From Polymyxa betae A26-41 (Eukaryota; Protista; Endomyxa: Phytomyxea): DNA of 64,000 nucleotides. A model generated the notes under the pieces. That model had not been told where the DNA came from. It ran no database searches and saw nothing but the letters and a program-made list of their open reading frames with translations. How positions within the stretch are numbered: position 1 is the stretch's first letter; each line of letters opens with the position of its first letter. Shown piece after piece: positions 37,840 to 40,918 of the stretch. The position numbers were made by a program, and so were the translations under genes. Where the stretch lies: positions 1 through 64,000 of the forward strand of contig RBZT01000633.1 of NCBI GenBank assembly GCA_003693705.1, given 5' to 3'.

Positions 37840-40800
37840 ATGTCGTCGTTGATGCCGCTAATGTCGAGTCGGAACCCGAATCTGAGCACGAAAGCGCTGA
37901 AAACGATGGGACTTTCTGTCCAAGATCTGTTCGAGAGCTTCATCGGGCCGCGGGCGGGACAGCTGAGCCGCCAGGAATTTAGCATCTTCTGGAGTGCCAT
38001 CGGCAACTCCGAATTGAAGGAGAACAAAGAAACGCTCATCGTCTTGAAACTCTTCATCAAATATCTCGTCGATGTTGGTCTGTTTCTACTTGCGCTTCGA
38101 CCCAAATAACGTTCTGTTCAGGTATCGACAGACTCGTCGAGAAGACTGCCTGATTTTCCATTACAATCGGCGCTGAACACAATTATTTTCATCTGTCTGT
38201 ACCTGCCAGTAAAACCCGACACGACCCTGAAGAAACTAGTCCAGACCTGGGCGCCCCTGGTCGACGCCCTTCGAAAAGATACAGTGCTAGTATCCTATAA
38301 CGAAGCCGTATCGATGATTAAAGCCAATCTGGTAGACGAAACCGACGCCTTCGACCAACTCGTAGCGAACATCCACCGAGTGCACACGAAAGAAGTCGGT
38401 ACGAGTCGTCCCGAAACCACTGGACTCATTGTCGCTACAGACGTTCAAAGTGCTAACCTTAGAGTGCATCCCGACGCTGCACCGCCAGGATTTCCTTTGC
38501 CCGTCGCTCGCCTTCTCATATTCGGTCCTATTAGCGCAATGTCGAGATAAGGTCGGCTGTTACCCGAGAACTCTCCCAACCCCATGCTTAACCCCATCAC
38601 CCCAGAATCGGCGCCTGCGTATCTTCGACGCCATTCTCAATGAGCTGGCTGTTGTTCGGGCGCAACCCTCCTCCATGGAACAGCAGCAATCCATATTGGC
38701 TCTTCTACATCTATTGCGTTCTGTTCTCTCATACGTACATTTCCCCTATTGTTTGGGTATAATAGCTTGTGCTGATGGCGGCGATAGTGGCGGGCACCGA
38801 CCGGGCCCTTCTTGCAGACGGCCCTGGACAGGATCTGCCCGTTCTTCTCGTGGCCTGCGCCCTATTCGTTGGTGACGCGCCGCGTCCTGCTCATGCTGAA
38901 GCAGGAGATGCTGGCACCGGGTAACTCGATTCTGGAGCGATTCGCGGCCGAGAGTCGTGTCCCTGAGACCAGCCAGATCATCAATGGGATCCTCAGTCGA
39001 TCACGCCCGATTTTCTACGTCATCGATGCGACGTGCCCGCTGTCCAGTAATTTCAGTCTGCTGATCGGACTTCATAGCGCCGATGCCTACATCGACGGCG
39101 AAAACAACATGTTCGCCTCAGGCCTGTCGACCGAAGTTCAAGCGCTTCTGCTTCTCAGTGAGTTCGCTGTCATCGTTAGCAACATGATCTGATCCAATCC
39201 AGATATCTTGCACTCCCCCAGCGCTCCCATCGACCCCAACGATATTTACAGAATCACGGAAGAGGATGTTAACATGCTGTTCGGACAGACTGTCAATGTT
39301 CTGCAGGAATCTCTTGACATGTAAATATTGCTTTACGTCAACATTTCTTGCTAAACGACGTCATCGTTCAGCTCACCTGAAGACGCCATCTCGCATCGTG
39401 AGCGCAATTTCGCTCTGATTCGATCGCAGTTCACCAAGATCGCCCGAGCCAACGAATCTCGAGGCGTTCCCAGCGACCTTACCTTACCATCGCCGCTTCC
39501 ATCCACTTTAATGCCGCCCTTACCAGAAATCGCCCACGTGCACTGGCTCGTCAATCGCGACTATGTTCTACCATCTGCGGAGATTGTCGCCCAGCTCGGG
39601 TATGGAACGCTGCATGAACCCTAAACCCTGAGGTTTACATTCTAGTAGGTACACCCCGTTCCCGAAGACGCCGCTGATCGACAAGCTGGAAAAGGTTATG
39701 CGCCTATACGAGGCTTTTTCTGACGCCCAAGACCCAGTCGAGATTCGTCTCTGTATCGCCGGCTCGGACGCCATCATCCACCAGGTCGCCACAGCCTATC
39801 TTGAGTTGATCAAACGCGAAACCGAACCGCTCAAAGGCATCATGATTCGGTCAGCTGAAAGACAACTGTTATATCTGCCTCTGAGTTAACTCGTTCAGAT
39901 TCTTTCTGATTCCCTTCCGGAATAACATCTTGTCGGCGTACATCGCCAGGTTCGATTCATGGTATAACCGACAGCTGTACGTGCCATTCACGACGAGGAA
40001 TTACTTCGTGCCGTCGATGACCGAAGAGGAGCCGTTATTTAACGAGCATCGAAGCGAAGATCCAATCACCCCATTCGGCCAGATGCTGCAGTCTAATATC
40101 GAGAGCTATATTCGCGAGGCGGAATATTCGCTTCAGGTGAAGCTTTTTCAGATCGAAGGTATAAAATATATCATTTTGATAGAATATATTAATCAATCGG
40201 TTAAGGATGGAGACGAGCAACGACCGACGACGGCCCTGCCGACATGGTTGTCCCGTTGGTTCAGCGTGCCGAAATCGGTCGCATTGCGGCGGCAATGCTG
40301 TTCAAGAGCACGGTTCGCGAGGGAACGATGCCGGCCCTGCGAGATGTAAAAGACATCTTTCGAGATAAAGTCAAAACGCAAGATTGTCTCCTCTGACCAT
40401 ATCGGCTTACTTTAAATTAGGATTTTGCCTATACTCCGCTGGAATTGAACGTTGAAATGGTTCGTGTGGATCTGCTAGGCAATAGCCACGCTGACGACCA
40501 GCGAAAGCTGAGCGTTATTCGGGAAGAGCCCATTCCCTTCGATCGAATTTCCATTTCGAATGTTCCATCAGCAGACGATCCAGCACATCCGCCTAACCCG
40601 AAGGATCCCTGGCTTGAAGTAAGCGATCATCATTCCTGTTGTCAGACTCTTTTCTGAGCGAATAATTCGTAGATATTCGCGAAGGTTTCCGAACATAAAT
40701 CGAAACTGAAGAATAAGTACAGTTTCCTGATTCAGGAGCCGCTTCAGCATGTTTGCTATCTGAAACTGTCTACTGCCCGTGAGGAACAATCCTTTCGGGT

Positions 40801-40918
40801 CGTTGTTGATGGGGAATCATTTGGCCCTTTCAAACAGATTCGTATCTCCAAAATCGAGGATCATTTGCAGAGGCAGGCTTCACTTAATATCGCAACATTC
40901 TTCCCGATTCAGCCTTAA
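37840..40918 (+). CDS. PI3K class IB regulatory subunit (p101/p87, PIK3R5/6)-like protein; C-terminal half also PACS-like
   Basis: PFFSWPAPYSLVTRRVLLMLKQEMLAPG, IRLCIAGSDAIIHQVATAY, LSAYIARFDSWYNRQL, YIREAEYSLQVKLFQIE, FRVVVDGESF and terminal LNIATF. These follow the order of the blocks I recall from p101. Confidence 0.7.

Follow-up and report, generated by a model that had tools for sequence, protein, structure and literature searches.

A homologue of the PI3K adaptors p101 and p84 with an additional N-terminal solenoid in the plasmodiophorid Polymyxa betae

Introduction

Is the p101/p84 type of phosphoinositide 3-kinase (PI3K) adaptor, which in vertebrate immune cells connects receptors with the lipid kinase PI3K-gamma, a vertebrate invention? 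This question is raised by a gene of the root-parasitic protist Polymyxa betae A26-41 located in the stretch of DNA analysed here (contig RBZT01000633.1, 64,000 nucleotides; hereafter, the window). An earlier note, made from the letters of the DNA alone, had taken the product of this gene for a homologue of p101/p87, adaptors which it described as generally regarded as a vertebrate innovation. The latter view is indeed in print. In the phylogeny of Philippon et al. (2015), a BLASTP search at E ≤ 1e-30 recovered class IB regulatory subunits from vertebrates alone; the authors placed their origin in the vertebrate ancestor and raised the question of what regulates class IB kinases in other organisms (PMC4617754). 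Such a threshold would miss the protist proteins described here. Our literature search, with most subscription journals outside its coverage, returned no paper reporting protist p101/p84 orthologues.

Searches were run with single window exons or with database homologues, and exons were joined only for the frame check and for classifying base changes. The structural results refer to a full-length homologue, P0020, and the window exons entered the alignments as separate rows. The genome searched was the assembly of 27,085,814 bases in 1,001 contigs.

Structure and Conservation of the Gene

The gene is a real, conserved and spliced gene of a plasmodiophorid (Rhizaria). Removal of 11 GT-AG introns of 45–64 nt gives a single open frame from the ATG at 37840 to the stop at 40916–40918, with the following organization:

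37840..40918, + strand: whole gene; 837 aa encoded by 12 exons; homologue of p101/p84, extended at the N-terminus
37840..38073, + strand: exon 1, aa 1–78; the family-specific helical extension begins; matches P0007, P0003 and L084; next intron seen spliced
38122..38398, + strand: exon 2, aa 79–170; remainder of the extension and beginning of the p101-like solenoid
38463..38551, + strand: exon 3, aa 171–200; helical solenoid; 55% identity to L084
38606..38734, + strand: exon 4, aa 201–243; helices aligned with p101 residues ~63–95, LALLH motif
38788..39157, + strand: exon 5, aa 244–366; F-x-W-P-x-P-Y turn and first strand of the alpha/beta domain
38842..38865, + strand: F-x-W-P-x-P-Y turn of exon 5; aligned with p101 111–153, the presumed PI3K-contact helices
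39203..39320, + strand: exon 6, aa 367–405; helical; introns on both sides seen spliced
39372..39599, + strand: exon 7, aa 406–481; helix and proline-rich linker
39649..39849, + strand: exon 8, aa 482–548; alpha/beta core; IAGSD at 39755, in register with DAG-kinase GGDG and p101 VFGSD
39899..40158, + strand: exon 9, aa 549–635; top-conserved block of the family, ARxDSWY at 39945, aligned with p101 607–635 and the PACS C-terminal region
40206..40369, + strand: exon 10, aa 636–690; beta-sandwich begins; donor set from spliced contigs
40421..40618, + strand: exon 11, aa 691–756; beta-sandwich (equivalent of the p101 GBD)
40673..40918, + strand: exon 12, aa 757–837; end of the sandwich; DGE at 40808–40816 (DAG-kinase C-terminal motif); closing strand ending in TFFP

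Introns 1, 5, 6, 8 and 10 are skipped in contigs of run X1, which comes from a close strain (95–99% alike to the window). The status of X1 as RNA is a guess by the tool; since the introns are skipped precisely, we regard these contigs as spliced transcripts. They place the donor of intron 10 at 40370, which yields the 837 aa product, and rule out a donor at 40346. Between X1 and the window, 23 synonymous and 6 non-synonymous changes were counted, and the gene is under purifying selection. In a related genome (locus L084, 60.8% GC; perhaps Plasmodiophora brassicae, to go by the GC content alone), all 12 exons were matched in order with 48–82% identity; the orthologue has one additional intron inside exon 5, and the genes on either side of it show no synteny with the window. 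A division into two separate genes (37840–38550 and 38788–40918) was discarded because single homologues cover exons 1–12. All eight motifs listed in the earlier note were located on the + strand in the order given there, at 38842, 38899, 39755, 39782, 39936, 40107, 40140 and 40883.

Directly downstream, at 41798–42838 on the − strand, repeated chitin-binding (Chitin_bind_1) domains are followed by an apparent chitinase domain. Other neighbours in the window encode histone H2B (35963–36454, −), SNAPc subunit 3 (30116–31186, +) and a largest RNA polymerase subunit (60393–64000, +). Polyubiquitin of Rhizaria typically carries an insertion at the repeat junction. The polyubiquitin locus of the assembly (C686, 63776–65183) encodes plain 76-aa repeats without a junction insertion, by loss or as a foreign contig, and this marker was set aside as uninformative.

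A Family of Protist Homologues

Exon 5 retrieved environmental eukaryotic proteins, three of which are complete and follow the window exons in colinear order, and profile searches enlarged the family to about 20 protist and environmental homologues with 25–40% identity. Most matches are unnamed. These searches were word-limited and never returned animal p101, so that blanks in them have no bearing on the range of the family. Only two members bear names: one is from Paulinella chromatophora, the other is a transcript (P0021, EukProt EP01006) under the label of the euglenid Ploeotia vitrea. The tree neither placed the latter with Paulinella nor gave it a firm position, and it may be a contaminant; taken as genuine, it would widen the family to Discoba. 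Window exon 5 grouped, at a support of 99, with four rows derived from other genomes, and P0007 joined them next. As a single-sequence query, P0007 matched itself alone. A bacterial SprB-repeat protein (P0005) was dropped from the family as a repeat artefact. In the database, an automatic PF10486 (PI3K_1B_p101) tag is already attached to several members.

Homology to p101 and p84

The earlier claim of p101/p87 homology held at the levels of both profile and structure. Exon 5 scored 25.9 bits against PF10486 (E 2.7e-6; cut-off 23) and was the only match to this profile in the genome; among the family rows, 18 of 21 matched it at E ≤ 0.1. Conversely, a profile of the family built with no named animal sequence and run against 177,635 PDB sequences matched p101 (E 2.6e-10) and p84 (E 1.7e-4) alone, and the p84 match reached E 1.8e-7 with a deeper profile. 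The 80-column core block by itself also ranked p101 first (E 0.005). The language-model neighbours were p101/p84 clusters followed by PACS, with a low recognition score.

The model of P0020 (pLDDT 81.8, pTM 0.86) gave p84/p101 chains as ranks 1–8 in Foldseek, with E from 5e-17 to 1.5e-13. In VIA-align it was overlaid on p84 with Z 26.6 (517 residues, rmsd 4.4) and on p101 with Z 23.3 (497 residues, rmsd 4.8), the next family reaching Z 14.7. Residues 146–854 of the model were superposed on p101 11–877 at a structural identity to p101/p84 of 14–17%. Solenoid, alpha/beta domain and beta-sandwich are present over the full length of P0020, and the window exons are colinear with the full-length members. 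The window protein is homologous to p101 and p84 across the whole folded length of the latter two.

It could be argued that a helical domain was fused independently to a PACS-like dead kinase and that the likeness to p101 is convergent, given that helical solenoids are common and that the sandwich carries no sequence signal. Against this, sequence similarity is significant in both the helical part and the core, which occur in the same order, and the superposition spans the full length. We consider convergence extremely unlikely.

The first ~145 aa form an extension that is conserved across the family and has no counterpart in p101/p84. In the model it folds as a generic HEAT-like solenoid, and no specific fold match was obtained for it (best Z 7.6; no Foldseek match under E 0.001). 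Residues 19–183 of the P0020 model gave a weak match to the helical domain of p101/p84 (Z 7.1 and 6.1). The extension is possibly an internal repeat, but generic helical matches reach similar values.

A Dead DAG-Kinase Fold Shared with PACS

The C-terminal half had also been likened to PACS1/2 in the earlier note, and both profile and structure bear this out. Pacs-1 (PF10254) was matched at E ≤ 0.1 by 14 of the 21 family rows; scores of the core reached 28.5 bits (cut-off 25), with one member above the cut-off, and P0020 exceeded the Pfam cut-offs of both Pacs-1 and p101. No single window exon matched Pacs-1. The Atlas structure search returned p101 (TM 0.56), PACS2, PACS1 and DAG kinases, in this order. 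Aligned with the PACS of the host itself, the family gave E 7e-4 over 119 columns at a probability of only 26%.

This host PACS lies at C307 27043–28275 (L042:2994-5279, +), where C2_PACS_N and Pacs-1 are found in one 762-codon open frame. The N-terminal C2 domain (PF25332), which binds cargo and WDR37, is present in it and absent from all 21 family rows. An identity of the window gene as a PACS orthologue was rejected on these grounds, and because the genome has a separate true PACS, the gene is placed on the p101 branch. The "ancestral p101/PACS-type adaptor" suggested earlier is to be corrected accordingly. The C-terminal region of PACS1 has been described as being without a defined function (bioRxiv 10.1101/2025.11.05.686565), and our literature search returned no paper linking it with p101. 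The functionally undefined C-terminal half of the disease genes PACS1/2 is now tied to p101 and to the DAG-kinase fold.

It is already known that p101 has a DAG-kinase fold in which the catalytic residues are not conserved (PMC8397274). The register of the family motifs against six bacterial enzymes is visible but weak (E 0.004). GGDG-T becomes G-G-D-x-L in the family and G-S-D-A in the window protein, P-x-G-T-x-N is replaced in the family, and most members keep G-G-D or G-x-D together with the C-terminal D-G, which reads D-G-E in the window. From these motifs, the core is best read as a catalytically dead DAG-kinase fold, i.e., a pseudokinase. Membership in the DAG/sphingosine/NAD kinase superfamily with activity or nucleotide binding retained would be in keeping with the fold, which is the same as that of YegS (Z 14.7 for P0020, 249/261 residues), and with the retained remnants. 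This is very unlikely, as both glycine-rich motifs are altered, none of the 21 members has a DAGK Pfam match, and p101 itself has the fold without the catalytic residues.

Possible Role as a PI3K Adaptor

In vertebrates, the alpha3-alpha4 and alpha5-alpha6 loops of p101 and p84 contact p110-gamma at its C2 domain and linkers; p101 residues 25–175 suffice for this binding, and p110-gamma depends on its ABD for binding p101. In the protist family, the helices matching the p110-gamma-contact part are aligned with p101 63–155, with invariant F, W and P (a correspondence at the sequence level, with inferred helix numbering). Two of the three top conservation peaks of P0020, at ~230 and ~267, are in these helices, and F264, W267 and P270 (P0020 numbering) are present in 18 of 18 members.

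The earlier note had also proposed looking for class I PI3K and G-beta/gamma genes in the genome. Besides Vps34, two PI3Ks of the host combine an RBD with helical and kinase domains. These RBD-bearing class I/II-type genes, the candidate partners, lie at C594 ~75300–79400 and C839 ~510500–514900, and the Vps34-type gene is on C749. The C594 exon tested had class I kinases as its best match and a basic activation loop.

Because conservation peaks in the stretch corresponding to p101 63–155 and the host has class I/II-type PI3Ks, scaffolding of a class I-type PI3K by a dead kinase appears to be the most likely function, with a probability that we put slightly above even. We infer the following mode of action. 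The protein would be a scaffold in which the helical solenoid, extended by ~145 aa, is fused to the dead DAG-kinase-fold core of alpha/beta domain and beta-sandwich. It may bind one of the two RBD-bearing PI3Ks via the conserved helical turns and hold it at membranes via the core. However, the first-loop sequence of plasmodiophorids differs from that of the remaining family, which counts against this role, and the conserved W-P-x-P could be structural instead of forming an interface. In the host PI3Ks, an ABD of the p110-gamma type was looked for and not detected.

Alternatively, the protein may be a PI3K-independent membrane or trafficking scaffold of a more PACS-like kind, with the long solenoid binding a coat or another partner and PI3K binding gained later in animals. 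The Pacs-1 matches described above are in line with this, as are the resemblance of the extension to generic HEAT-like solenoids and the location of the highest conservation peak of the family, which is the PACS-shared ARxDSWY block and not the PI3K-contact helices. On the other hand, the family lacks the PACS cargo domain, the host has a PACS of its own, and the helical domain specific to p101 has been retained and is conserved. We regard this alternative as rather unlikely and retain the PI3K scaffold as the preferred reading.

Coupling to G Proteins

What would trigger a PI3K scaffold of this kind? Speculatively, the trigger may be G-beta-gamma released by a GPCR/G-alpha system of the host, for example in zoospore chemotaxis. 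Binding of G-beta-gamma by p101 involves two helices between beta8 and beta9, which have no equivalent in p84 (PMC10068899). We checked for this feature, i.e., the beta8-beta9 helices and residues 816–830. The protist sandwich had no sequence match to the p101 GBD; the P0020 model shows two short helices (778–788) between two sandwich strands, a compatible place, with no residue-level alignment to p101. About nine G-alpha loci are present in the genome. As to the G-beta/gamma genes, weak searches of this intron-rich genome gave nothing above the cut-off for G-beta or G-gamma, and a pair of short DNA patterns, obtained by back-translating G-beta motifs, had no matches or matches at chance level. 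We consider a coupling of the window protein to G-beta-gamma and GPCRs rather unlikely, and a p84-like mode, in which a small GTPase binds the RBD of the kinase, about as likely.

A spliced GRK-like gene with an N-terminal RGS-like part, a kinase domain and a C-terminus ending in C-C-R-I-S is located in the window at 2523–4786 (−). In the related genome, an RGS-domain gene (L084:10153-11535) follows the orthologue at a distance of ~2 kb on its downstream side.

Evolutionary Origin

The p101/p84 adaptor type is not confined to vertebrates, which contradicts its published vertebrate origin. Given a full-length rhizarian homologue, either the adaptor arose deep in the history of eukaryotes or its gene was transferred long ago. 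If the gene had come from an animal, by lateral transfer or as a contaminant, the homology would be uninformative on ancient signalling, and this could explain why named homologues are few (Paulinella and one euglenid-labelled transcript) and why the nearest Atlas clusters are mostly chordate. This explanation is quite improbable. The eleven short introns are common to the related genome and the gene is under purifying selection; the structural identity to p101/p84 is as low as stated above, within a family diversified to 25–40% identity; and the extension is absent from vertebrates. A recent transfer is excluded, and a very old one is possible.

A broader scenario may be proposed, which we consider unlikely in its full form. 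The p101/p84 and PACS proteins would be sister pseudokinases derived from a DAG-kinase-fold enzyme, predating the split between Rhizaria and animals, and the p101 branch would already have coupled G-beta-gamma to class I PI3K. If this is true, the leukocyte GPCR-PI3K-gamma chemotaxis module goes back to ancient eukaryotes; rhizarian zoospores and amoebae would have preserved it, and in other lineages it would have been lost or have escaped recognition. For plasmodiophorids, the gene is a testable candidate linking receptor signalling with PIP3 production.

Comparison with Known Systems

With the DAG kinase/sphingosine kinase/YegS/NAD kinase superfamily, the window family shares the two-domain fold (Z 12–15) and the G-x-D and D-G(E) remnants in register, but its glycine-rich ATP-binding motifs are broken and large helical parts are added. 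The C-terminal region of PACS1/PACS2 (PF10254) is alike in a weak to moderate core profile match and in the Atlas structure search, in which ~350 residues are matched (TM 0.47, PACS2 model), whereas the N-terminal C2 (FBR) domain of PACS is replaced in the window family by the helical solenoid. PIK3R6/p84 (p87; PDB 8AJ8) is the top structural match and has the same architecture, although the identity is 14% and the sequence score is below that of p101. PIK3R5/p101 (PF10486; PDB 7MEZ, 8SO9) has the helical solenoid, alpha/beta domain and beta-sandwich in the same order, as well as the W-P-x-P-Y turn, the GSD core motif, the D-x-W-Y block and the dead DAG-kinase fold. The protist protein seems to be about equally far from p101 and p84, as expected if the split predated their duplication. 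The gene encodes a protist protein of the p101/p84 lineage, to which a further solenoid is added at the N-terminus.
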